Below, piece after piece: positions 18,417-44,868 of a stretch of 47,333 nucleotides of DNA. The DNA lies in assembly GCA_001179505.1 (NCBI GenBank), contig CDMY01000582.1:1-47333 (forward strand), read 5' to 3'. Positions within the stretch are counted from its first letter, which is position 1; each line of letters begins with the position of its first letter. The notes under the pieces were generated by a model. It was not told where the DNA came from, ran no database searches, and saw only the letters and a program-made list of their open reading frames with translations. Position numbers and translations under genes: made by a program. The DNA is from Vitrella brassicaformis CCMP3155 (taxonomy: Eukaryota > Protista > Chromerida).

Positions 18417-19656
18417 TCAGTATCCGGCGGCCTTGTCGATGGGCGTCAGCATCTCCTTCTCGCCCGCCAGGAATCGGTCCAGGTTGCCCTCCATGACGTG
18501 CAGGGCACACTCGCTGTAGTCGGGCGTCCAGTCGGCGTTGTGGGCCGTGATGAGCACGTTGTCCAGCCCCCACAGCCCGGAGCTCTCCGGCAGCGGCTCC
18601 ACGTGGAACACGTCAAGCGCCGCGCCCCTGATGGCGCCGCGCTTCAGCACGTCGATCAATGCGTCCTCGTCAACCACTGTGCCACGACCTGCACCCATCC
18701 ATCCATCCATCCATCCACAACACGTACAGGATGGCCGTGCGTGTGTCTGTGTCTGTGTCTGTGTCTGTGTCTATGTCTGTGTCTGGGTGTGCTCTGACCG
18801 ATTGAGATGAAGACGGCAGTTGGCTTCATGGCGGCGAACTCCTTGGCGCCACAGAAGTTGAATGTGTCTGGCGTCCCGGGCAGCGAGCACACGACATAGT
18901 CCGAACGACGGAACACCTGCACAGAACGCACATCACATGCACACAGTCATGAACGAAAGCGTGAATCGATTGCATATGTGTCCAATCCATCTGTGTATGT
19001 GCAGTCTGGCTGACCTCCATCTTTTCCTCCTCGATTTCTGGCGAGAAGACCTCGTCGGCCAAATCGTCAGCGCCCTTGTTCTTGGAGCGCCTGAGTGCCA
19101 GTATCCTCATGCCGAAGGCGTGTTTGGCGATCTTGGCGGTGGCCTTGCCGATGTCACCGAAGCCCACGAAGCCCATGCTCTTGCCGTGCAGCTCGTGCAT
19201 GATGAACTTGTCCCAGTGCCGCGACTTGGTGTTGGCCATGATCCGCGGCACCTGCTTCTCGAAATGCAGCGCCGCAGCCATCGAGTACTCGGCCAGCGAC
19301 CGGCTGAAGGCCCCCTTGGCGTTGGTCACGGGGATGTCGGGCCGGTTCAGCAAAAACTGCTTGATGAAGGGATGCAGGGGCTCCAGGCCGGCGAACCACG
19401 AGTGCACCCACCGCACCTTGGGCAGCAGCGGCCACAGATCAGGGAGGATCTTGGCATCACCTGGCGGCACCCACACGAGCGCCTCGGCCTCGCTCAGATT
19501 GGGGTAGGCGGTGAACTCGGCGAGCGTGTTCCCGAGCAGGATGTCGGCCTTGCTCTCAAGGGTGCGGACGAGGGGGAGGGCGGCTGCCGAGGGATTCTTG
19601 TCCTTGTCGGCCAACACAGCTATGACGATCTTCTGGGATGAGGGACGTCCATTCAT
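18417..19656 (-). CDS. D-isomer-specific 2-hydroxyacid dehydrogenase (NAD(P)-binding)
   Basis: VTNAKG, GFVGFGDIG dinucleotide-binding loop, FISI|GRG (catalytic Arg), AALDVFHVEPLP (Glu), ITAHNA (His); 3 exons. Confidence 0.95.
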
Positions 19657-19688
19657 TGTTGTCGTCTGGGGAGGAGGCTGCGGGGAAA

Positions 19689-19701
19689 GGAAATTGAATG
19701 A
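19689..19701 (-). promoter_or_regulatory. Putative initiator-like core promoter element TCATTCAATTTCC
   Basis: On the minus strand ~33 bp upstream of the dehydrogenase ATG; resembles protist Inr (TCAYTY) plus an AATTT element; a similar TCATTC..GCATTTC occurs at ~14580-14600. Not tested statistically. Confidence 0.3.
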
Positions 19702-19870
19702 GAGAAGCGCCGGTGCGAGCTTGACTGGGAAATTGGACCGTTTCACGGTCACTTCGACGTGCGGACGCGAACGTCTTCACCGTGCAAGCATAGCGACAGC
19801 TGCGGCAAGCAAGGCTGTTCAGCGCCATCGCACAGGCGTCTGCGCCAGGCCAACACGACTGAAGCCACCG

Positions 19871-22800
19871 ATGGTGATGATGCTTCAGCGGCTGCTGCTG
19901 TGCCTTTGCGCCGTCTTTCTCTTCGGCGTCAGCCAGGTGAGGATCAGGAGTGCTTTTGTGGACGAAAATAGGTGTGTTGTCATCTCCGTACAGGCCGCGC
20001 CCATTGAAACCTTGATTGAGACTGTAGCGGATGTCCTCAACCAAACAGCCGACCCATGCACCGTACGCAGACCTCTTCTGCACAGATCTGAGCCTGTGTT
20101 GAGATGTGTCTGTCGGTCCATGCAGGATGTGGTAGAGTACTCGTGCGGCAAGTGGCGGGAAGCCTTTGAGCTGCCCAAAGAGGAGTCAAGATGGCTGAGA
20201 GCGTTCCATGGGCTCGACAACACAACAAAGTCAACCAACTGCGTGCACACCACTTGACAGATCAGAACACACGGGCCATCCACGTGTCTGCCCGCGTCTG
20301 CTTCTGTCCAACAGGCATTTGATCCGTGACGTCCTGGATGGTGGCAAGTGCTCTCAGCTGCCCAATCAAGAGGAGAAGAAAGAACCGGCAGACGGATGGG
20401 AGGAACTGCTGTTTTGCTACTACCAGGTGACGAAACACACGCGCGATCACACACGCGCTCATGTCGGCTGCTGCATACGTTGTCTGTCATTCAGGCGTGC
20501 ATGGATCAGGACCGCTTGGATGAGCTGGGCAGCCAGCCTCTGCTGTCCTTCATGGAAAGAGAGCTGCCATTTCTACTGGAGACAGACATCGGTGGATGGG
20601 AAACGATGACACCAGCTGGTCAGTCAGCCGATGCACGTGTACAAAGGTGTGGGAACACACATCACACACGACACGCCTACGTCTGTCTGCTTTGTTTCCC
20701 GTGTGTATGGTATGCAGAGAAAGGCAAAGTGATGGCTGAGATCCTGGCTCGCATGCACATTCACCCCTTTTCGCCGTTCTTCTCTGTTTACCTCGACGAG
20801 AACCCCCTTGTGGAAGAAGACAAAGTTGGGATTGCGATCAGCCAAGGCGGCCTTGTCCTGGACTATGGCCAGTACGACGAGGAGAAAGTGCTTCAGGCTT
20901 ACTTGGATTATCTCTCTGGAAGCCAGGAGCTCTTCCAAAGCGCCGTTGCTACCGGCAGTCCGCCGTCCCTCAAAGGCTCCCGCCGGGCTTTCCTGGAACC
21001 ACCTGCCGCTGCTGAGGAGACACTGGACATTGAGAAAGACCTGCAGAACATCTCTCTCAGCCCAACAGAGATAAAGGATCCTGTTGCGACAACGAATCTG
21101 ATGACCTTTGCTGACCTCAAGGACCTGATGCCTACATTCGACTGGGACACATTCTTCAAGACATTCGGTATGGAAGCACGAAAGCACGCGGCCAATGGTA
21201 CTGCATGAGATAGAATGTTCGTTGTGATGCTTCCATCCTTCCTTCAGGTGATGCACTCGGCTTGCCGGCAATGACAAACGAGACCGAGGTCATCATCCAC
21301 AACGAGACCTACTTCCGCGAGCTTAATAAGCTCCTCACAGAAGTGTGGGACGACAAGGCAATCCTGGCATACCTCCAAGGGCAACTATTTTCCGGGTAAG
21401 AGCAAAAGCTCAATAATGGCACACACCATTACGGGATTGCCTGTGCCCTTTCTCGTGCATATGTGGTCTGTCTTTCAGAATGGGTGCCTTGTTGAGCCGT
21501 GAGTGGTTGGAATTGTCATACGACTTCAACCGGAACGTCAAGAATGCCGAGCCCAGGGAGAGATGGGATGAATGTCAGGGTATGGCAAGAAGCACACTGA
21601 AATGGGTCAGACAATGTGAACAGCAAATCAGCGACGGAAAGGGAGAACAAGAGATCTTTGCGCTGTCCTTTTTCTCAGATCGTCGCTCGTGTTGTCCTGG
21701 AGGAGTTCGACCCGAACCTGAAAGCGGTGGCGGACGCCATGGTCGCCAACGTGAAAGCTGCCTTTCGCGATGTGCTGGACGAGATCCAATGGATGACCAA
21801 TGAGACCAAGTGAGTGCATTGAGTGCATGCCGAAGCGCACGGAAGCTCTGCTGGCATGGTGGGTTGCTCATCCAGGGACGTTGCGTACGAGAAGCTCGAG
21901 AAGGTCTGCAACACATCCGTCCACCCATGTATGTGTGCGGGTCTTTCTGTCTGGGTGTATCGAGAAGGTCACTTACCAGATCGCCAATCCCGCATGGATC
22001 CTCACCGACGAAGAATATCGCGTCAACTTCGAGAAGATCTACGGTCCTGAGACGGCGGCCGCTGAGCTGGATGCTCATCTTTTCGATGCAACTCTATACG
22101 TCCAGGAACAGACGGTATGCGAGGGAGCGACCAATGCTTCACACTTGCGCGCTTCAAACCTCTCCGCCTTGCTTACTTGTCAGCAACGATACTCTGTGAG
22201 TTTCTTCGGGAAGCCATTCGATCGTGAAGTCATCGGCTGGTATCGCTCGCCCATTGACACGAATGCCTTCTACGTTGCTGATTGGAACACCATGTGAGTG
22301 GGACGAGGTGAAGATTGGCGTGCGTGCATTATCATGCGTGTATTCTGCATGTCCTGGGCATCGCAGGACCTTTCTTGCCGGCATATTGCAAGCGCCTGTG
22401 TTCTACCCATTCAACGAGAGTGATGACTCTGAGAACGCCATTCTCGCGAAGACGGTCAGACGACCAAACAAGCGTGTCTCTCTCTCTCCCTCTATTGAAG
22501 TCTTTGTCTTTGTGTGGATGTGTCAATGTCTCGGCAGGCGATCAACCATGGTGGCATCGGGGCTGTGATGGGTCACGAACTAATCCACGGTACGTGAGCA
22601 TACAGGCAACTGACGATTGATGCCGCCCATCCAACTGTCCCTCTGCTTCGCATGGCCGTTTGACAGGGTTCGACACAAGAGGCCGCGAGTACAATCCCGA
22701 CGGCCTGCTGTTCAATTGGTGGAGCGATGTCTCTCGGGTAAGTAAGCGACGTCATGTATAATTCGTCGTGTACTCACTCTCTCTGTCTCCCTCTCTCGCC

Positions 22801-24081: not shown

Positions 24082-26095
24082 TCACTTCTTCTTCTTGGCT
24101 TGCTGTCTGACGTGCAGGGGGTTCTGTGTGGTGAGCGAGCGGATGTACGTCAGCCGACCGAACGCAGCGATGCGGGGCTTGCTCCGCTTCGTGTTCAACG
24201 GATGCCTGCACACACACACACACACACACACAGAGAGACACGCACACGGCAATATGCGTCACACGACGACACGCGCATCCATCAACAATACCTCTCCACT
24301 GGGAGCGCCCTGTTGAGCAGCGCCCAGTAGTAGTGGCTGGGGCCGATGTTATCCCAGACCTCCTTCATGGCATTGATGGCCTAACCACAGTCACATGATT
24401 CACACACATGGAGAGGGAGGGAGGGAGACATAAAGAGATAGATGCCAATCAGCGTGCAGACAGCTGCTGTGGTGGGCGGTGGTCTCTCACTCACCCGTAT
24501 TTTGCTGGCGAAGTCCCAGCCGCGCGATCGCTCGAGGATGCGGATCGTGTGCACCACATTGGCCCGATCTAACGGACGGACACGGAAGGGAGCAAAGGAC
24601 GATGTGCACCTGTTAGTGCAGCTGGCCCGTTCTATCATCTCGCTTACACTTCCAGTCCTTAGGCAGAGAGTGCGCGAAGCGCTGGAGAGTCGGGTACCTG
24701 CACACACACACACAGACCATACACACACTCGAGCGTCCGTCCGTCTATGAGCCATCCACCCACCGACCCATGCACCGTATTTTGGCGAGTTCTTCTTCGA
24801 GCGGTTTCCTCGGTTTGCCCATGGTGATGCCGCCCGTGACACCATGGGGGACGGCACTCTCGAACCCGAAATGGTTGCGGAAGGGGTGCAGGGGGTGGGC
24901 CCTGACGAGCGGAGGGAGTGATGAGTGGATGGACAGCACAACACACACACACACAAAGACAGTAAGGGGACCTTTTCCTTGTGTTGATATTTCTGTCTCC
25001 TCACTCTTCTGTGGGCTGGTTCTCCGGCAAAATGCTCAGGACTTCATCCACGTCAACCTTCTCACCTGCGCACACATTAGCTCCCACATGCATGTTCGTG
25101 CATTGGCTGGCCTCATCCACCCACCGACCCACTTACTCGCCCACCGTTCTCTCTCTTGACGTGCAGCTCGTTGATGATGGCCCCGATGGCGTGCAGCTTC
25201 TGCTGCAGCCTCTCACGGCTGTCGTAGTGGTACCGCACATCGCCGCGGAAGGCCATCAACGGCTCAATCACCTCGGGCGGCATCTTTGCCTGGAGGACAA
25301 GACGGAGACAACACTCCCTCTCTCTTTGCGTGCATGGCTGACTGACATCTCTCTGTGGGTGTGTGGATTACCTCCAGCCGCAGTTTGGTCAGGTCTGGCC
25401 GATACTTGTCCAGATAATTCTCCACCTGCACACACACACAGCGACAATCCATCCGTTGAGGTAGACATACGGCCGTGCCGCAGACATTTGTGTGTGGTGT
25501 GTGGCGTGTGGTTTGTGCGGTGCGGTGCATGCCTGTTCCTCGTCGAGTTTGTTGCGCGTGCAGTGGTCGTAGAGGATGCGTTGGAGCACCGCCCGCTTCA
25601 TCATGTAGGGGTTGTCGTAGTCAGCCAGCACGTTGACCAGCTTCGGACGGCTGCAATGACACACAATACACTTCCGCCTTTAGCCATCGACGGACGCATC
25701 TCCAGGGCTGACCTTTGATCCATTAGGTCGTCCCTCACTGCATTGGACATGACGTCGAAGAACTGGTCGGTCGGCGCACTCTAAAGGAAGGGATGAACCG
25801 ACATGACAGCACATCATTAGAGTGCACAGTGACTGGATTGACATACCGGCGTCTTCCACTGGTTCTTGAGCCGTTTTGTGATGTGCTCGTAGAGTTCCGC
25901 CTTCTGCCGGTCCTCACAGAGCGTCTGCAGGGCGACGCGGTCAGAGAAGGCCTCTGACCTGAGAGTGAGTTACACCCACACAGACAAACAAACGTTTGTG
26001 TGACGGCGGCCGACGGCTGTTGGCTGTCTTGCCGACTTACTCGGCTGGCTGCTCCTCTGCGCCCATCAGCTGAAAGCGTTTGTACTGCATACAAA

Positions 26096-26129
<34 letters not shown>

Positions 26130-26666
26130 GAGCAAGCACAGGCAATGGTTGGCTATGTGTCGGTCTGTCTATCTTTCGCCCAAACGCACCTTGACGGGTT
26201 TCCGCCGCGCATAAGCTGGCTTCCCCTTCTCCCGCTTCTTGACGCCCCGCTCCCTTTCCTCCTGCTCACGCCTGTCCACCACACGCCTCTCCACCAGCCG
26301 ACGGTCACGGCCCTGCAGCTCCGGCCCTATCTGCATCGCCGCAGCGTCGTCCGACTGCCACTTGGGCACCTCAGCCGACGGCGGATACACTCGCCGGTCG
26401 ATGAGGGTCTTGCGCGCGTCCCAGTTGCGCCTGTCGAACTGCCGCAAGAGCGCCTTGACCCGGGCCTTCTTCCGTGCCGCATCGGTGAGGAGGGATGAGT
26501 CATAAGCTGCTTCTTCTGTTTGGGGTAATGCTGGGGAGTCGGGGCTGTCGGTTGGCTCACGGGGCGGGGTAGAACGGGAAGACAAGAGGCGCGTGGTGGT
26601 GCACCTCACGAAAGAGCCAGATCCTCGGTGGTGGGGAAGCAGCGCCGCACATCGATGGCGGATCAT
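24082..26666 (-). CDS. Conserved-looking hypothetical protein, possibly mitochondrial/RNA-associated (complete copy A)
   Basis: About 12 exons in continuous frame from MIRHRCAALLPHHRG.. (Arg/Ser-rich presequence-like) to ..HVRQQAKKKK-TGA; includes YPTLQRFAHSLPKDWKYRANVVHTIRILERSRGWDFASKIR; one GC-AG intron (25426-25532). Confidence 0.75.
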
Positions 26667-26712
26667 TGTAGAAATGGAAGATGCCAGATGGGTACCACTT
26701 GGCCGCCTTGAC
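24888..26712. repeat. Segmental duplication, copy A (paired with 27727-29592)
   Basis: Colinear near-identity in exons and introns with scattered SNPs and microsatellite indels; homology stops sharply after ..GCCTTGAC at 26712/29592. Confidence 0.95.
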
Positions 26713-27239
26713 ACTCTCCCTGTATATATGTGTGTGAGCCTCTCTGCGACCCGAGATCTGTGCGTGTTCGTCTAAGCTCGCAGAAACCCCACACCCTAAA
26801 CCCTAGACTCTCTGCTTTGAGGGCTTCTTCCCATTGCAGGGGGGGGGGGAGGCCGGGGAAATAATGTTGGTGTGATGGGCTGTGTGTGTGGGGAGTTTGA
26901 GGGGATGGCCTTGCGTGTGTGAGAAGTGGGTATGCGGCAGGGGGGGTATCGATGGGGTGAGGGCGGTGAAGTGGTGAGAGGTGCAATTTGGTGGAAAGGG
27001 CGAATGGCCAACCGATGGGCGTTGGCAGTTCTCAGAACAACTTGCAGTAAAGGTCTCCAGTCAATACTCGTCCATCCAGGGCATCGCCAAGTTGGCAAAA
27101 AAGCCATGGACACAGACAGAGAGTGAGAGACAACCGAGTGAGTGCAGGGGTGAGTGGGGGTGCAAGGGGGGGTCCATACGATACACACACACACACACAA
27201 CAGACACACACACAGACAACAGACACACACACACACACA

Positions 27240-27383
27240 GGCTCGGCCCTTCGGGCCTCGCCTTCGCATCAACGGCCCACACACACACTTAGAAAGACAC
27301 AGGCGAGGCAGGTTTCGCTCTGCTCGGCTCGGCTCGGCTCGGCTCTGCTCGGCTCGGCTCGGCCCTTCGGGCCTCGCCTTCGC
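27240..27383. repeat. 28-bp direct repeat bracketing (GCTCG)n and (AC)n tracts
   Basis: GGCTCGGCCCTTCGGGCCTCGCCTTCGC at ~27240 and ~27356; AGGCGAGGC at 27301 is complementary to part of it. Confidence 0.8.
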
Positions 27384-27426
27384 CTGAGTGACACACACAC
27401 ACACACAGAGGGAGGGAGAGAGGGAG

Positions 27427-27726
27427 NNNNNNNNNNNNNNNNNNNNNNNNNNNNNNNNNNNNNNNNNNNNNNNNNNNNNNNNNNNNNNNNNNNNNNNNNN
27501 NNNNNNNNNNNNNNNNNNNNNNNNNNNNNNNNNNNNNNNNNNNNNNNNNNNNNNNNNNNNNNNNNNNNNNNNNNNNNNNNNNNNNNNNNNNNNNNNNNNN
27601 NNNNNNNNNNNNNNNNNNNNNNNNNNNNNNNNNNNNNNNNNNNNNNNNNNNNNNNNNNNNNNNNNNNNNNNNNNNNNNNNNNNNNNNNNNNNNNNNNNNN
27701 NNNNNNNNNNNNNNNNNNNNNNNNNN
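27427..27726. other. Assembly gap (300 N)
   Basis: Run of N. Confidence 1.
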
Positions 27727-29546
27727 GCAGGGGGTGGGCCCGGAGGGAGGGAGGGAGGGAGGGAGGGGTGGGTGGGTGGGCAGCATACACACACACACAC
27801 ACACACACACAAAGACAGTAAGGGGACCTTTCCTTGTGTTGATCTTTCTGTCTCCTCACTCACTCTTCTGTGGGCTGGTTCTCCGGCAAAATGCTCAGAA
27901 CTTCATCCACGTCCACCTTCTCACCTGCACACACATTAGCTCCCACATGCATGTTCGTGCATTGGCTGGCCTCATCCACCCACCGACCCACTCACTCGCC
28001 CACCGTTCTCTCTCTTGACGTGAAGCTCGTTGATGATGGCCCCGATGGCGTGCAGCTTCTGCTGCAGCCTCTCGCGGCTGTCGTAGTGGTACCGCACATC
28101 GCCGCGGAAGGCCATCAGCGGCTCAATCACCTCGGGCGGCATCTTTGCCTGGAGGACAAGACGGAGACAACACTCCCTCTCTCTTTGCGTGCATGGCTGG
28201 CATCTCTCTGTGGGTGTGTGGTGTGGACCTGATTACCTCCAGCCGCAGTTTGGTCAGGTCTGGCCGATACTTGTCCAGATAATTCTCCACCTGCCACATT
28301 AACACACACAGCGATCGTCCGTTGAGATAGACATACGCTCCCGTGCCGCAGACATTTGTGTGTGGTGTATGGCGTGTGGTTTGTGCGGTGCGGTGCATGC
28401 CTGTTCCTCGTCGAGTTTGTTGCGCGTGCAGTGGTCGTAGAGGATGCGTTGGAGCACCGCCCGCTTCATCATGTAGGGGTTGTCGTAGTCAGCCAGCACG
28501 TTGACCAGCTTCGGACGGCTGCAATGACACACAATACACTTCCGCCTTTAGCCATCGACGGACGCATCTCCAGGGCTGACCTTTGATCCATTAGGTCGTC
28601 CCTCACTGCATTGGACATGACGTCGAAGAACTGGTCGGTCGGCGCACTCTAAAGGAAGGGATGAACCGACATGACAGCACATCATTAGAGTGCACAGTGA
28701 CTGGATTGACATACCGGCGTCTTCCACTGGTTCTTGAGCCGTTTTGTGATGTGCTCGTAGAGTTCCGCCTTCTGCCGGTCCTCACAGAGCGTCTGCAGGG
28801 CGACGCGGTCAGAGAAGGCCTCTGACCTGAGAGTGAGTTACACCCACACAGACAAACAAACGTTTGTGTGACGGCGGCCGACGGCTGTTGGCTGTCTTGC
28901 CGACTTACTCGGCTGGCTGCTCCTCTGCGCCCATCAGCTGAAAGCGTTTGTACTGCATACAAACAAACAAACAAACAAACAAACACACACACACACACAC
29001 ACACGGGGAGAGCAAGCGCAGGCAATGGTTGGCTATGTGTCGGTCTGTCTATCTTTCGCACAAACGCACCTTGACGGGTTTCCGCCGCGCATATGCTGGC
29101 TTGCCCTTCTCCCGCTTCTTGACGCCCCGCTCCCTTTCCTCCTGCTCACGCCTGTCCACCACACGCCTCTCCACCAGCCGACGGTCACGGCCCTGCAGCT
29201 CCGGCCCTATCTGCATCGCCGCAGCGTCGTCCGACTGCCACTTGGGCACCTCAGCCGACGGCGGATACACTCGCCGGTCGATGAGGGTCTTCCGCGCGTC
29301 CCAGTTGAGCCTGTCGAACTGCCGCAAGAGCGCCTTGACCCGGGCCTTCTTCCGTGCCGCATCGGTGAGCAGGGATGAGTCATAAGCTGCTTCTTCTGTT
29401 TGTGGTAAAGCTGGGGAGTCGGGGCTGTCGGTTGGCTCACGGGGCGGGGTAGAACTGGAAGACAAGGGGCGCGTGGTGGTGCACCTCACGAAAGAGCCAG
29501 ATCCTCGGTGGTGGGGAAGCAGCGCCGCATATCGATGGCGGATCAT
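27727..29546 (-). CDS. Copy B of the 24082-26666 gene; 5' exons present, 3' end lost in the gap
   Basis: Same exon series from MIRHRYAALLPHHRG to ..ILPENQPTE; many differences from copy A are synonymous; the next acceptor AG is removed by an 8-nt deletion at the gap edge. Confidence 0.7.
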
Positions 29547-29890
29547 TGTAGAAATGGAAGATGCCAGATGGCTACCACTTGGACGCCTTGACGGGGACCT
29601 TCTGCAGCGCAGATGAGCTGCGAGGCTCCAGGCTGTGGTGCGCCACCGGTTTCATGCAGCACCCTAGGCGACTCTTGCGAGCTTTAGTCAAGCTTGCGAG
29701 GAGATCTGAAGGCGAATCTCCCCCGATAGATGCAGTAGCAGCAGTTGTCAGACATTGCACAGCCAACAGACGCTGCCACAGCCAACAGACACTGTCAGCC
29801 AGTGCCGGCTCCTGTAAGGTACGAGGAGGAGATCTGCACAGCACCGCTCCGGCGCACTTTGCGACGGCCTGAGGCGTCAGCACGGCACAG

Positions 29891-32755: not shown

Positions 32756-34206
32756 AGCTGGTGTCTCGTGTGTCCGCCTTTGCCTGTCTGTGTATGTGTG
32801 TGAATGAATGAATGTTTGTTTAGTGCGTGTGTGCGTAAGTGTTTCTATGGTGTCACATCACACCACGGAGGGGTCGACGTGTCGAGTGTGTGTGTGTGTG
32901 AGTGTATGTGTGGTATCGCAGATCGAGCTAGCAGCTAGTGACTCCCCCGGCTGCCATGCCAGGCCAGGCCAGGCCCATACCTACCTTTGCGATGGATGCA
33001 GCCATGCCATGCCATGCCATGTATGTCTCATATATGTGGATGTGTGTGAGTTTGAGAGTGGATGTGCCTACCGTGCCACCCTACGTACACCTCCCCCGTC
33101 TCCCGGCGTCTTGTGGTCAGTGTCCTTCACTTGCCTCTTCCTTGCTAATGGAAATAGCATGGAAGCGCCGAGATGAAGGACGCCGGCCACAAGACGCCAA
33201 AGGCGGTGCTAGAAGACGCAAACCGGCCTACACACCTACTTCTGCTTTGCCTGTGAATGCAGCAATGCCTTAATGCACGTATCATGCGCGTACACACGGA
33301 TGGATGGATGTGTGGATGGGTGGATGGGTGCGCGTGCGTGTGAAAGCGAGGGCGGTGCATTTTTTGCGCCTGCTGGCCATGGCTCGGTGGGTGAGGGACG
33401 AGATGGTTGGACGACGAATGGATGGACGTACGTGTACGTGTGTGTATGTGTGTGTAATTAGATACATATGTAGATCTGGAAAGACAGCCGACCAAGGTGA
33501 CAATACCTCTGACGGCCAGGGAGGGAGGGAGGGAGGGAGGGATGGGGAGGTGTGCGCGTCTGTCGGTTTTCTGCCTGATGTGCCGATGTGCCGAAGGGCA
33601 TGAGAACCTCTTCTCGTCCTGCCTGGTACAAAAACCCATCTCGTATACATACCTTTTCAGACTAGTGTGCCCATCCGGCCATGTGGCCGGCCAGCCGGTG
33701 CCTTCCTTGCTTCTGCCACATATGTACAATTTTGGAGGTGCTTTTGTTGTGTGCGCTGTGTGTCTGAGCCCGGCGATGGATACAGATCGGTCTCGTTTGC
33801 GTCAGTGCAAAGTTCCGTTTCTCACGCGTGTCGACGCACATATGGGGCGCATACCTCACCGGCACAACCTGATGCGAGATCCACGTGCGAGCTTGGCGAT
33901 CCCTCCAACAGCGTTTACATTTCGCGGCCGTTGCGGATCCCCGCGCGCTCTCCTCTCTCTTCGTTAGCCGTGCGACGACAGCCCTCCCTGTCTCTCTGCC
34001 CTCTGTCTTAGCGGCCAGGCTCCTCTCCCCTTTCTGTCCTCTCATCTGCAGCATTCTCCCTCGACTCCCTCCACTCTCATCGCTTTTGACTCCGAGTCTG
34101 TCTCTCCTCGACTTGTTCTCTTCAGCCAGCCCCTTGTTGTTGTTGTTTCTTCACCTGCCCGCTGCTCGTCTGCGTTTCCACCCGTCGTCCGCCCGCTCCA
34201 CGACCG

Positions 34207-34878
34207 ATGAAGCTCCTTTCCCTTTCCCTGCTGGTATGCCTGCTTGGCATCGCACTGGTCTGCGCTGATGATCAGAAGCGGCGGGCTGCTAATGCCGATG
34301 CTCCGTCTGCGGTGGCCCGGCGTTTGCGAGGAGGGGAAGCTGGTGACACCACAGACGAAGTGACATCCGATGGTACGCACACACGAAGTGACATAGATGC
34401 CTCGCAGTCAGAGGTACGCCTTTCGTGTGTATTTGTCTGTGTGCTTGTAAGTAGGTGGTGTGTCTGATGCTCTTGTGACGGAGCCAGCGGCAGCAGACGA
34501 TGAGGTCGCGGCTGATGAGTCGACGGCGGCACTTACAGGTGGGTGTGCAGACAGACATCCCCGCCGCAACTGCACACACGTCATAGATTATTTTGGCCAC
34601 GTACTGTATGTGTGTGTGGTGTGTGTGCAGATAAAGATGAAGATGAGCCCAGTGGCCTGGAGGCTGTGGAGGAGTCATCGAGTCCCACAGAGCGGAGGCT
34701 GGGCCCGGACTTCTGGGACAAGCTCAAGTACTACAAGAACAAGCTCAAGCAGAAGTGGTATGGCTACAAGAACAAGAAGTATGGTGGCGGTGGCTACAAG
34801 AACAAGAAGTATGGTGGCGGTGGCTACGGCCGTGGGTATGGCCGTGGCTACGGCGGTGGCTACGGCGGTTACTGGTAG
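34207..34878 (+). CDS. Small secreted precursor: signal peptide, acidic pro-region, Tyr/Lys/Gly-rich C-terminal peptide; 3 exons
   Basis: MKLLSLSLLVCLLGIALVCA|DD..; two phase-1 introns keep frame; ERRL followed by GPDFWDKLKYYKNKLKQKWY(GYKNKKYGGG)x2GYGRGYGRGYGGGYGGYW*; perfect 30-bp coding duplication 34762-34821. Confidence 0.85.
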
Positions 34879-36229
34879 ACACACCACAACCAACACATTG
34901 TGTGTGTGGGTGCCTTGACACATAGTATAGTATAGGATGGGTGAATGTGTAAAGGCTCGCGCGTCTTTGTTTAAGCACGAGCACCGTATTACGTGTAGAG
35001 AGAGGTATGGATGACATCAAATGGGTGGGCATAGAGGGTGGCTGGTGTGTGTTTGCCTCAAGTGACTGGAGGGATGCCATTGGGATGGTCCATCCCATCC
35101 ACGTGTCTGTCGATTGTGCATTGCACACATGTACATAACATATCTGGTCGTTCTTTGTTAGTGAGACAAGAAGCGAGGGAGGGTGTAGTGTAGTGTGGCT
35201 GGTTCTGGCAGTATGTTCTGTCTAAGTGCCTGTCTGTGTGTCTGCTGCTCTGCCAGATGTGATCGATATCGATGCTGCCCGTGCAAAAGTCTTTTGACCG
35301 CATTTTCTTGCTCCCAAGGGATCGGCGTCGTCGTGTGAGCTCTCAAGTGCGTGTATGTGTGTGGGGGGGGGAGCGTGTTGATACAGACCTTGGACGATAC
35401 GCGATAAGGCGGTACAATAGTGCACAATCATGAGCTGCACAGAATGATCGCACCGCACTCTGGATAGCTCATTCAGTCATCAGTCTTTGCGGCACGTTCA
35501 TCCATCCACCCATCCATCGCTCCATCGCTCCATCGCTCCATCCCTTCCCTCGTCATATATCACAATTGCCTACATCGACTCCCCCGCCTGATGTGTCAGT
35601 CAGTCAGTCAGCTATACGCGGAGAGGTCAGTCATTGCAGCTACATAGCTCTTTGCCACGGCTTATTGTGTGTCTCACGGTCTGATGTGTATGTGTGTGTG
35701 TGTGTGAGGACAGATCAATTGGTGTCGCTGTACAACCAGGAGGATCTCTTTGTCTGTGTTTCGATTGATCAAGCTTAAGACACGTCGCACATCGGAAACG
35801 ATCAGCTCATGAGTCGCACATCCCCTTGCATGAATCTGTGGGTCCACTTGCTGGCCGATATAAAATGAAGACAGCGATAGATAGCAGCGGCCAGGCATTC
35901 TCCAATTACCACACTGCAAAAATCTCTGATTTGAGACACAACAGAAGTGTGATCGAGCTGCCCTTCTTTTGTTGGTCCTCCAGCCCCATGCGCACCTTGA
36001 TCTTCATGTCGCGCAGCTACATCTTCGTCTTGGTTGGGCTCAGTAGAACCAGCCGTGTCGTTGACTGGGTCAACCAGCGCCAGCAGCGGCCACTCTCCCT
36101 CTCGCCGTTTCTCTCGCCCTTTCCCATTCCTTCGCTGTTTGTCGCTTTGTTGTTCCAGCCACAGCCGTACCGAGACCTTCATGTGGGTGATCAGTTGGAC
36201 GTTGGTCTTGGGTGGCCGGGCTAGCCCCA

Positions 36230-40325: not shown

Positions 40326-41966
40326 TCACTTCTGCGGCGGAGCGTCTTCATAGCCGTAGGGGTTGGTGGACTGCCACTTCCACGCGTTGGCACACGCCTC
40401 CCTGTTCATCACATCAACGATATCCATCCATCAGACACGAACAAACTACATTCACGCAATCCCTGTCATGTGCCGTGTCTTCGTCGTACTGTATGGTCCT
40501 CTTTGCGGTCCAGTTGAGCTCCTTGTTGGCCTTGGAGGGGTCCGCAACGACAGTCGCCAAGTCGCCAGCACGCCTGACACCACACACATACACACAGGGA
40601 ACGAATGGGTGTTGGGTGCTGGTTTGGCTAATCGATTAGGTCTGACCCACCTGGCTTCGATTTTGTAAGGTATTTTGACGCCGGAGGCCTTCTCGAAGGA
40701 GTCGACCATTTCCAGTACCGACACACCCTTACCCGTGCCTATGCACACATACACGTACACGTACACGTACACATGCGCTTCGTCGGTGGTCTCTCTGAGT
40801 GCGTCTGTACCTACCGAGGTTGTGTGTGATGCAGCATGGGTCGCCCTGGAAGAGCTTGGTCAAGGCCGCGATGTGGCCCTCAGCCAAATCCTCCACGTGC
40901 AGATAATCCCGCACACCTGACACAACCACATACACAGACAACACATACGCGTACACGTCTGTAATGTGTGCACACGCACGAGTGCAAGCTCACGTACCGG
41001 TGCCGTCCGGTGTGTTGTAGTCGTTGCCGAACACGCTGAGCTGTGGTCGTCTGCCGACGGCGACCTGCTGAATGTAGGGTAGGAGGTTGTTGGGCTGGGA
41101 GGGCGACTCGCCGATGCGGCCGGAGGGGTGCGCGCCCACGGGATTGAAGTACCGCAGGATGGAGATCTTCCACGACGGATCGCTCTTGTACAGATCCTGC
41201 AATATCTGCAGATGATATATATGATCGACAATGCCATCACATCCTCTCTCACAGACGGCCAACCCCATGTGCTGTGTTCGTATGCATGTGCCCCTTTCTC
41301 CCACACACACACACTCACAGACCTGTTCGATCATGAATTTGGTCCATCCATAGGGATTGGACGGCCCCAGCGCGTCTTGCTCGGTGAGCGGCGTCTCTTT
41401 TGGCGCATACACGGTGGCGCTGGACGAGAAGACGAGCACCTTGCAGCCCGCCTCGCGCATCACTTTGAGCAGCGTCAGAGTCCCCGAGACGTTGTTGGTG
41501 TAGTACTCGAGCGGCATCGCCACGCTCTCACCCACGGCCTTCAACGCCGCGTAGTGGATCACACCATCGAATTTCTGTCGGCCAACCCACCACAACGGCA
41601 CACCGCATAAATATACTCTGTATGGTGTCTGTGCATTGTCCCGTCTCTCTCTCACCTGTTCTTTGAACAACTTGAGCAGCGCGTCTGTGTCGATTGTGTC
41701 GGTGGTGAAGAGCGGGACGTCCTCGCCGGTGATCTGCTTGAGGCGCTCCTTGACCTTGAGCGACGCGTTGCTCAGGTTGTCCAGAATCGACACGCGATAA
41801 CCCGCCTTGAGCAGATGCACCACCGTGTGTGAACCGATATAACCCGCGCCACCCGTACTGCGCACCAGAAGAGATGACAAGTGCATTCGGGGAACCAACA
41901 GAGATCTGCCTTTCCTCGCATCTTTCCTCACCAGAGGATGTGTTTGGCTCCCCCTTCGCCAGCCAT
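40326..41966 (-). CDS. galE: UDP-glucose 4-epimerase
   Basis: [12 protein letters not shown]|[37 protein letters not shown] (YxxxK), [20 protein letters not shown]|GVRDYLHV, R|RAGD, ..WQSTNPYGY. Confidence 0.98.
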
Positions 41967-42243
41967 GGCTGCCCTCAGTGCCGTCCTGCACCCTCTTTGG
42001 CTCTCCGAAGACGACGCACAGGCGGCTCGACACAGATGGAAGCAATCACCCGGTGCTGCCGCCACAAGCAGGAGCAGTGCGCAGCCAACAAGCAGCACAC
42101 TGCGGCGCATCCACCGAAGGGGATCGCCGAATCGTACGCGAGCTAGACTTGCAGATCTCCCCCAGATACACGAACGAATTGACGGCTTTCATGCGACTCA
42201 GGAGGGCCTTCATGCACAGCTGAGTCGAAAACAGCCGACCGAA

Positions 42244-44868
<2,625 letters not shown>

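Follow-up and report, generated by a model that had tools for sequence, protein, structure and literature searches.

A gene family of Vitrella brassicaformis predicted to encode secreted precursors with conserved Arg-x-Leu sites and hypervariable cationic peptides of possible defence type

The window analyzed was the whole 47,333-nucleotide stretch of contig CDMY01000582.1 (C582) of Vitrella brassicaformis CCMP3155. The translated gene at 34207-34878 was found to be the database protein CEM24555.1 (A0A0G4G7I3; P0001 in our set, 165 aa), and the open reading frame pieces, coordinates and last-exon frame proposed from the letters alone were borne out by this match. The features of the locus are listed in Table 1. 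Both introns had GT-AG borders and were kept in eight of eight close paralogues, as was the GT donor of the first intron at 34373. The spliced transcript product from MMETSP (P0003) carried the exon-2 residues of CEM24555.1 that are specific to C582; this product is a mosaic of three paralogues and is either chimeric through assembly or encoded by a gene from a different strain. The cleavage site of the signal peptide was predicted from a V-x-A pattern at positions -3/-1 together with the hydrophobic core, and the AF2 model contained a helix at residues 3-28 that spans this core. We are highly confident that CEM24555.1 is a real, expressed and secreted precursor.

Table 1. Features of the CEM24555.1 locus (positions are those of the window)
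Feature	Position	Strand	Remarks
CEM24555.1 gene	34207-34878	+	Vitrella brassicaformis CCMP3155; three exons, intact, product 165 aa, unnamed
CEM24555.1 exons	34207-34372 / 34455-34538 / 34631-34878	+	Annotated and transcript-supported model
Upstream region, promoter / 5' UTR	33910-34206	+	Conserved; co-duplicated with the gene
Exon 1	34207-34372	+	Signal peptide, short basic stretch, first Arg-Arg-Leu, start of acidic spacer
Signal peptide	34207-34266, residues 1-20	+	Predicted cleavage after Ala20
ARRLRGG motif, TEXEL/PEXEL-like site 1	34315-34335, residues 37-43	+	Invariant in 12/12 family genes
Intron 1	34373-34454	+	82 nt, GT-AG; P0001 junction, same in MMETSP transcript product P0003
Exon 2, acidic spacer	34455-34538	+	P0001
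Intron 2	34539-34630	+	92 nt, GT-AG, GT-rich
Exon 3 pro-part	34631-34701	+	Acidic stretch with SSSPTERRL at its end
Second Arg-Arg-Leu, site 2	34693-34701, residues 105-107	+	Arg-x-Leu here in 12/12 genes
Predicted mature peptide, 58 aa, net +12	34702-34875	+	Lys/Trp/Tyr helix (~34705-34779), then Gly/Tyr/Lys/Arg repeat tail
Perfect tandem duplication, 30 bp, 2 x 10 codons	34761-34790 / 34791-34820	+	Inside the peptide; TRF
12-nt repeat array (GGYG / GRGY), 4-5 units	34815-34874	+	Inside the peptide
Stop codon TAG	34876-34878	+	
3' UTR / downstream part of ~1.5 kb duplicated unit	34879-35380	+	Conserved

In the upstream region, homology to seven of seven close paralogues began at approximately 33907-33911, with a mean pairwise identity of 0.85 over aligned bases. 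On the other side of the gene, 88% identity to the C738 paralogue extended up to approximately 35380, and the mean identity of this downstream part (3' UTR) among paralogues was 0.83 over aligned bases and, with gaps counted, was above that of the peptide-coding part. The possibility that C582 is an allelic copy of C738 was rejected because homology ends at the gene unit. A functional link to the secreted Mn-SOD encoded upstream was also rejected, as the duplicated unit is only ~1.5 kb and the SOD accompanies none of the paralogues.

The predicted mature part contained exactly the 12 Tyr, 12 Lys, 19 Gly, 2 Arg and 2 Asp residues that had been counted in the sequence-only reading, together with 3 Trp and no Ser, and the strongly acidic pro-region described there was found to have a net charge of -15 after the signal peptide compared to +12 for the peptide. 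The 12 Tyr within 58 aa lie in Tyr-rich basic repeats of the GYGG, GRGY and YKNKK types. The 58-aa peptide of CEM24555.1 is very polar. The 30-bp duplication was confirmed as perfect (TRF score 134, 100% match) and is recent, since the closest paralogue (C738) lacks it and has, apart from this, the same codons throughout its mature region. The AF2 model predicted a helix at residues 109-133 (pLDDT 71-77) and a disordered Gly/Tyr tail. The segment ahead of the repeats, which had been described as amphipathic-looking, was predicted to be helical in this model. Its own hydrophobic moment was not above that of shuffled sequences (p = 0.24). Across the family, 8 of 13 peptides had a hydrophobic moment above shuffles at p < 0.05 (combined p about 2e-6), and in both subfamilies AF2 predicted helices immediately behind the RxL site.

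The search for paralogues with the order signal peptide, acidic region, RRL and cationic peptide revealed a family of 12 intact genes in Vitrella, CEM24555.1 and 11 others, all with this layout. In all 12 the scaffold consisted of a signal peptide, ARRLRGG approximately 18 residues further on, an acidic spacer, a second Arg-x-Leu and a cationic C-terminal peptide. ARRLRGG was invariant across subfamilies that share just ~38% identity overall, and the cationic peptides beyond the second Arg-x-Leu differed strongly between genes. In one paralogue (C748:31204-31994), the unit formed by the acidic spacer, SSPTERRL and peptide was present twice in one chain. The four genes of the sister subfamily 2 encoded helix plus C-terminal Cys-loop peptides without the Gly/Tyr tail, and this tail was truncated in the C748_19k paralogue and lost through a premature stop in C366. 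The charges of the two halves were paired in both subfamilies, with pro-pieces of -13 to -18 and peptides of +8 to +13 in subfamily 1, and pro-pieces of -2 to -6 and peptides of +4 to +7 in subfamily 2. Weak matches in the same genome (L023-L025) were rejected as genes of this family.

No relatives outside Vitrella were found in an exhaustive profile search of 1.84 billion representatives, in which a match to P0011, a repeat protein resembling a phage tail fibre, was spurious. Neither the mature peptide nor P0006 had a match among PDB sequences, and the ESM Atlas contained the CEM24555.1 sequence itself and no neighbour. As judged by these searches, the family is private to Vitrella, and its layout is one common to germ-killing peptides and diatom wall peptides. 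The automatic UniRef name of these proteins is 'RxLR effector protein', a database label and not a tested assignment. A host-directed effector of the oomycete type, with RRLR marking delivery into coral cells, would agree with this name, with the coral association of Vitrella, and with an R-R-L-R (residues 38-41) that lies 18 residues past the signal peptide and, as in oomycete RxLR-dEER effectors, within 40 residues of it and ahead of an acidic region. Nevertheless, such a role is very unlikely. A Pfam scan of seven family proteins gave nothing above noise at E <= 10, RXLR family included; neither a dEER downstream nor a WY-type domain was present; AF2 predicted two helices only and no folded effector domain; and no oomycete homologue was found among the 1.84e9 representatives. 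Vitrella is moreover of an unrelated lineage, free-living and photosynthetic, and we found no paper linking it with RxLR, nor one describing antimicrobial peptides of Vitrella.

When the locus was compared between paralogues, the peptide-coding part was the most variable stretch, above introns and UTRs. With gaps included, identity was lowest in the peptide (0.53) compared to 0.71-0.73 in the introns and 0.68 in the 3' UTR, and the pro-part of exon 3 was the most conserved stretch, at 0.95 with gaps included and with a mean identity of 0.96. The peptide dN/dS of CEM24555.1 (and its C738 twin) was 0.14-0.17 against three other genes of the same peptide type. Across every informative pair within a type it was 0.08-0.17, and one such pair had 6 synonymous and 0 non-synonymous differences. 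Against the C748_19k and C366 peptide types, the peptide dN/dS of CEM24555.1 was 1.6-1.7. In subfamily 2 it was 1.2-2.7 (p = 0.02-0.05 for three pairs), and one pair had 6 differences in 145 prepro codons compared to 44 in 54 peptide codons (p = 4e-21). The dS of the peptide exceeded that of the prepro part. These findings show that the peptide is hypervariable between paralogues and under purifying selection within a peptide type, though homogenisation of the flanks by gene conversion, as opposed to selection on the peptide, could account for part of the hypervariable pattern. Together, the recurrence of the layout, the invariant Arg-x-Leu, the two-module gene, the tracking of charge between the halves and the divergence focused on the peptide give good support to the prepro-peptide architecture proposed earlier, and we infer that the 58-aa peptide may be released from the precursor.

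A conserved prepro-region joined to a hypervariable cationic mature peptide is characteristic of frog dermaseptin/brevinin-type precursors. The Vitrella genes are similar in forming a multigene family with recent duplications, in their conserved signal and acidic pro-piece followed by hypervariable cationic peptides predicted to form helices, in a dN/dS above 1 in the peptide part, and in the terminal motif of the subfamily 2 peptides, a small disulfide loop that resembles the 'Rana box'. In contrast to the frog precursors, the site is Arg-x-Leu and not Lys-Arg, the producer is a single-celled alga, homology is absent, and the peptide of CEM24555.1 is far more polar and Gly/Tyr-rich. The combination of a conserved signal and anionic pro-piece with a hypervariable cationic mature peptide is that of antimicrobial-peptide precursors, which are a functional class and not a homology family. 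Fast divergence between paralogues, a prohormone-like layout and a two-module polyprotein gene would also be expected of secreted signalling or recognition peptides cut at RxL from prohormone-like precursors, acting as pheromone- or quorum-like cues in the zoospore/sporangium cycle or in the interaction with a coral host. We consider such a role improbable, as receptor ligands are not typically 28-62 aa long with low-complexity tails and a net charge reaching +13, no candidate receptor is known, and an acidic pro-piece that matches its peptide in charge is the mark of toxic cationic cargo, not of a hormone.

Arg-x-Leu was invariant at 25 of 25 sites in the family and recurred before the second module of the two-module gene. 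The sole change, RRL to RGL, kept the P3 Arg and the P1 Leu, pointing to Leu-dependent and not dibasic cleavage. In CEM24555.1, Arg38 is the 18th residue past the predicted signal-peptide cleavage, and the second RRL precedes the C-terminal 58 aa. Both RRLRG (residues 38-42) and RRLGP (residues 105-109) fit the TEXEL consensus RRLxx; the PEXEL consensus RxLxE/Q/D is matched at neither site because position 5 lacks E/Q/D. PEXEL motifs typically lie 15-30 residues after the signal peptide, a range that includes the position of site 1, and ASP5 cleaves RRLxx after the Leu and matures substrates at their N- and C-terminal ends (PMC4764566). The Vitrella genome contains an exon on C688 (L034:1468-2631:-) with DTGS and DSG motifs that encodes an aspartyl protease of the plasmepsin V / ASP5 type; its top PDB match was plasmepsin V at 4e-39 compared to 3e-7 for any other aspartic protease, and it is the candidate cognate clade-D aspartyl protease. 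Processing by a dibasic convertase is placed second because searching the Vitrella genome exon by exon in six frames revealed no kexin/furin P-domain, a negative that does not prove such a convertase absent. In the two-module gene, the first peptide would keep an acidic tail of 15 residues if cutting took place at RRL only, which implies further trimming or an incomplete model. Overall, the precursor is somewhat likely to be processed at its RxL sites.

The likeness to substrates of Toxoplasma ASP5 and Plasmodium plasmepsin V lies in an RRLxx approximately 18 residues past the signal peptide, a second RRL near the C-terminal part and a PMV/ASP5-type protease encoded in the same genome. Unlike those systems, Vitrella is a free-living phototroph with no host cell for export, its cargo is a short, cationic peptide of low complexity in place of a folded effector, Gly or Pro occupies position 5 where PEXEL has E/Q/D, and CEM24555.1 has no sequence homology to GRA or PEXEL proteins. 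The same N-terminal region might be taken for a bipartite plastid-targeting leader (signal plus transit peptide) of a plastid or periplastid protein that is not secreted, as chromerid plastid proteins begin with a signal peptide and the ~20 residues that follow it here are rich in Ala, Ser and Arg with a net charge of +2. However, Asp-Asp comes first after the predicted cleavage, a later stretch of ~67 aa is acidic (net -17) and unlike a transit peptide, and the invariant motif, an RxL site of the protease type, recurs ahead of each peptide module, all of which makes plastid targeting extremely unlikely.

Basic decapeptide-type repeats of Gly, Tyr and Lys are present in sandcastle-worm Pc-1/Pc-2 and in mussel foot proteins, which have acidic partners for coacervation. 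The decapeptide repeats of CEM24555.1 are similar to those of these cements, its acidic and basic halves almost cancel, and the Gly/Tyr tail is under strong purifying selection within the CEM24555.1 peptide type. The genome was found to encode one tyrosinase and to have about three loci for haem peroxidases of the animal type, so that a tyrosinase is available as in the cement systems, and none of these loci is linked to the family. The peptide may accordingly be viewed as a wall-building or adhesive polycation (silaffin- or cement-like), cleaved or still joined to the acidic half, which would reside in the thick sporangial wall or an attachment pad, form complex coacervates with polyanions and be cross-linked through Tyr (DOPA, dityrosine). 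In contrast to the long repeat proteins of marine cements, the Vitrella tail is short (~30 aa) and is not family-wide, being dispensable in C748_19k, C366 and the four subfamily 2 genes. A dN/dS above 1 and unrelated peptides on one scaffold are also unusual for structural matrix proteins, and Vitrella is not known to form silica or a comparable mineral. The nearest layout among wall proteins is that of the diatom Sil1p precursor (Cylindrotheca fusiformis), which consists of a signal peptide, an adjoining RXL, an acidic N-domain of ~88 aa and a basic Lys-rich C-part with RRIL/RRNL motifs (PMC4557024). CEM24555.1 matches it in each of these elements, including RR(x)L delimiters, and its architecture fits a wall-building precursor of this kind equally well. 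In Sil1p, however, each of seven repeats closes with the motif, which is then trimmed away. In Vitrella the motif stands ahead of a single peptide, or of two peptides in one paralogue; the Vitrella peptide has Tyr/Gly repeats and a Trp-containing helix, lacks the Ser on whose phosphorylation silaffins rely, and shows no homology. A wall or adhesive function is rather unlikely, yet it is the main rival of a defence role.

Among the three functions that had been proposed from the sequence alone (adhesive, wall or defence), the family-level evidence leans to defence, namely the magainin-like helices, C-terminal Cys loop and dN/dS > 1 of the subfamily 2 peptides, and the wall and adhesive proposals remain at a lower probability. 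Our preferred reading, to which we assign a probability of approximately 45%, is that CEM24555.1 is a secreted precursor from which processing at RxL frees a cationic peptide of defence type; the defence-type function taken by itself is possible but held at slightly less than even odds. In the proposed sequence of events, the signal peptide would be removed in the ER after Ala20, and a PMV/ASP5-type protease would then cut on the C-terminal side of each RRL, after Leu40 and Leu107, as at apicomplexan PEXEL/TEXEL sites. The acidic pro-piece (-15) would mask the +12 peptide during export, and the freed 58-aa peptide would be an extracellular polycation. Its N-terminal Lys/Trp/Tyr helix would bind anionic surfaces, most likely microbial envelopes, making it a defence or allelopathic peptide. 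The wider proposal that the PMV/ASP5-type protease of Vitrella acts as a pro-peptide convertase at Arg-x-Leu, freeing fast-evolving secreted cationic defence peptides, is at present doubtful.

Vitrella is related to the malaria and Toxoplasma parasites and is itself free-living and photosynthetic. If the proposal is true, the PEXEL/TEXEL export signal of the parasites descends from an ordinary peptide-maturation site, and the same logic might be common to the RXL sites of diatom wall peptides and to oomycete RxLR. The family would supply short and assayable candidate natural substrates for the ancestral form of the apicomplexan export-licensing protease, so that the role of PMV/ASP5 before parasitism could be put to direct test in an alga that grows in culture. 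It would also be the first family of gene-encoded antimicrobial peptides to be reported from a chromerid alga, and it may add lineage-specific cationic peptides (Lys/Trp helices, Gly/Tyr tails and Cys-loop helices) from a coral-reef microbe that could matter for interactions between alga, bacteria and coral, or as peptide or biomaterial leads.

In the preferred defence reading, the Gly/Tyr(/Arg) tail would add binding based on Tyr and cation-pi contacts, as in nematode NLP-29/31. The nematode NLP/CNC peptides have neither a Lys-rich helix nor an acidic pro-piece of such length, and their release takes place at dibasic sites. Without homology to them, CEM24555.1 is like NLP-29/NLP-31 and the CNC family in its predicted secretion and in its GYGG / GRGY-type repeats, and NLP-31 is a Gly/Tyr-rich antimicrobial, DNA-binding peptide (PMC5019075).

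The window gene (34207-34878 on the forward strand of Vitrella brassicaformis CCMP3155 contig CDMY01000582.1, or G000:C582, all 47,333 bp of which make up the window) was found to consist of three exons, and its 165-residue product (P0001; CEM24555.1, A0A0G4G7I3) is entered at NCBI as an 'unnamed protein product' and in UniRef under the automatic label 'RxLR effector protein'. Both introns are of the GT-AG type, and the splice sites were kept in 8 of 8 close paralogues. The last exon and its frame in the annotated model were as the sequence-only reading had assumed, and the composition that it gave for the 58-residue peptide predicted to be released after the second RRL (34702-34875; 12 Tyr, 12 Lys, 19 Gly, 2 Arg and 2 Asp) was exact. 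The net charge of this peptide was +12, and the pro-region, rightly described as strongly acidic, carried a net charge of -15. In P0003 (MMETSP Transcript_52073), the exon junctions were exactly as annotated. P0003 is an exact mosaic of three paralogues, with exon 1 of C748_157k, an exon 2 stretch specific to C582 and the peptide of C748_19k (names give contig and approximate position). Either several expressed paralogues were joined into a chimera during de novo assembly, or the gene is a recombinant one carried by another strain. In both cases P0003 shows that spliced transcripts of the family exist, and very probably spliced transcripts of the window gene itself. We put the probability that the window gene encodes a real secreted precursor at about 0.9.

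When the alga's own genome was searched exon by exon, 12 intact genes with the same signal peptide-acidic-RRL layout were found, the window gene among them. Subfamily 1 (n = 8) comprises C582, C738, five genes over 140 kb of C748, and C366. Subfamily 2 (n = 4; proteins P0006 to P0009) consists of two tandem pairs, at G000:C342:49240-52570 and C338:108162-111496 (-); a run of N follows the C338_108k gene. Identity between the subfamilies was only approximately 38%, and the scaffold common to both is a signal peptide, (A/V)xARRLRGG, an acidic spacer, SS(S/G)P...Arg-x-Leu and a cationic peptide, with a 39-residue spacer insert in two subfamily 2 members. The duplicated unit of the window gene spans approximately 1.5 kb (window 33910-35380), with promoter region and 3' UTR inside it. 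Beyond this unit, C582 and C738 have no flanking sequence in common, which makes C582 a genuine paralogue of C738 instead of an allelic copy. The proposed recent expansion also held, because the perfect 30-bp tandem duplication (34761-34820) is the sole difference between the peptides of the window gene and its C738 twin.

No Pfam family or PDB relative was found for the family proteins, and no Atlas neighbour for the window protein. When 1.84 billion representatives were searched exhaustively by profile, no genuine relative emerged outside the Vitrella members and one Logan/ENA-derived subfamily 2-like fragment (P0010, P0012); a match to one repeat protein was spurious. P0010 and P0012, from Logan and ENA contigs of 2.4-2.8 kb, are intron read-through open reading frames with a slightly different subfamily 2 exon 1, and the family is therefore present in another assembly, either of another Vitrella strain or of an environmental sample.

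The (A/V)xARRLRGG motif was invariant in the family and lies 17-22 residues past the signal peptide; PEXEL sites lie 15-30 residues past it (PMC4764566). Arg-x-Leu was kept at 25 of 25 sites (12 first, 12 second and one extra in a two-module gene), the sole change being RRL to RGL in P0008, with Arg and Leu retained. The two-module gene, C748:31204-31994 (-) (L005/L015), encodes a mini-polyprotein in one reading frame, in which each peptide module (+8 for the first; the second much less basic, +3) has its own acidic SSPTERRL junction ahead of it. Copying of the junction before each module is the strongest sequence-level argument that it is a processing site. Simple dibasic cleavage is disfavored, since Leu is invariant and the RGL variant exists; no kexin/furin P-domain was found in an exon-wise six-frame search of the genome, which does not prove its absence. 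Among several pepsin-family proteases encoded in the genome (clade-D proteases are treated in PMC8540915), an exon at C688:132600-133091 (-) (L034:1468-2631), with DTGS and DSG catalytic motifs and a Cys-rich insert, matched plasmepsin V structures (PDB 4zl4, 4e-39), compared to 3e-7 or worse for all other solved aspartic proteases. This plasmepsin V/ASP5-type protease is a candidate for the enzyme that cuts RxL sites, and processing of the precursor at these sites appears probable. That the protein is an RxLR effector, as labeled in UniRef, is less likely, and no link between Vitrella and RxLR was found in the literature; a plastid-targeting leader is likewise a less likely explanation of the N-terminal part.

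Pro-piece charge followed peptide charge: in subfamily 1, pro-pieces of -13 to -18 accompany peptides of +8 to +13, and in subfamily 2, pro-pieces of -2 to -6 accompany peptides of +4 to +7. In the AlphaFold2 model of P0001 built on the family alignment, just two elements were predicted, one helix in the signal peptide and another spanning residues 109-133 (pLDDT 71-77) directly past the second RRL, and the spacer and Gly/Tyr tail were disordered. The predicted helix of P0006 also starts at the RxL site, with lower confidence. Over their first 26 residues, 8 of 13 family peptides had a hydrophobic moment above that of shuffles, though the peptide of the window gene did not (p = 0.24); with one peptide per type combined, p was approximately 2e-6. 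Subfamily 2 peptides, rich in Lys, Phe and Gly, have the appearance of classical helical antimicrobial peptides and finish with a small two-Cys loop (CGGPC or C-x5-C).

With gaps counted, identity among subfamily 1 genes was 0.93 in the signal peptide, 0.95 in the pro-part adjoining RRL, 0.71-0.73 in the introns, 0.68 in the 3' UTR and 0.53 in the peptide-coding part. Among the five genes of the window gene's peptide type, the peptide is clearly under purifying selection (dN/dS 0.08-0.17; in one pair, 6 synonymous and 0 non-synonymous changes), and against the two most divergent types, C748_19k and C366, dN/dS was approximately 0.7-2.0. The contrast between conserved prepro part and divergent peptide was sharper in subfamily 2, with 93-98% identity in flanks, introns and prepro exons and 55-75% in the peptide part, and dN of 0.02-0.06 and 0.32-0.54 in prepro and peptide, respectively. 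Peptide dN/dS was 1.2-2.7 (pooled 1.84; three pairs individually significant, p = 0.02-0.05), and one pair had 6 differences over 145 prepro codons compared to 44 over 54 peptide codons (p = 4e-21). Some of this pattern may come from gene conversion of the flanks; with or without it, peptide diversity is being kept.

We propose that an ER-targeted precursor would be cut at both RxL sites by a plasmepsin V/ASP5-type protease, that the acidic pro-piece would neutralize the +12 peptide in transit, and that the released peptide would work outside the cell as a polycation, most likely in defense or allelopathy. Defense itself is a tentative assignment from sequence features, and no antimicrobial peptides of Vitrella were found described in the literature. 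The main alternative, a wall or adhesive polycation, is rather unlikely. The peptide composition resembles that of marine cement proteins, and tyrosinase and heme peroxidases are present in the genome, yet the Gly/Tyr tail is dispensable across the family and the peptides evolve under diversification. The precursor shares the architecture of the diatom silaffin precursor Sil1p, in which a signal peptide and RXL come ahead of an acidic domain and of basic Lys-rich peptides with RR(I/N)L motifs (PMC4557024), but the predicted mature peptide of the window gene is without Ser. A secreted signaling peptide is less likely than a defense polycation. In C366:114442-114959 (-) (P0005), a premature TAG removes the ancestral Gly/Tyr ending, leaving a Lys/Trp peptide of 28 residues (+13) without the tail; its former '...YY-stop' codons can still be read immediately downstream. 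Tyrosinase is encoded by a single gene (C759:118921-119703, -) and animal-type heme peroxidases by approximately three loci (C206, C556 and C870); enzymes of both kinds could modify secreted peptides that are rich in Tyr, and neither kind is linked to the family.

Exons of the window gene and domain matches elsewhere in the window
Feature	Position	Strand
Exon 1, window gene	34207-34372	+
Exon 2, window gene	34455-34538	+
Exon 3, window gene	34631-34878	+
D-2-hydroxyacid dehydrogenase exon match	18826-19749	-
Peptidase M13 (neprilysin-like) exon match	20348-21205	+
NAD-dependent epimerase/dehydratase exon match	40990-42042	-
TPP enzyme exon match	42911-43684	+

None of the four neighbors in the table was common to the paralogous loci. 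The window also contains a direct tandem duplication of approximately 2.87 kb (25000-27860 and 27859-29600), in which an open reading frame at 26796-27860 had no Pfam match. The copies were 96-100% identical over the stretches compared and lie just upstream of a secreted Mn-SOD gene.
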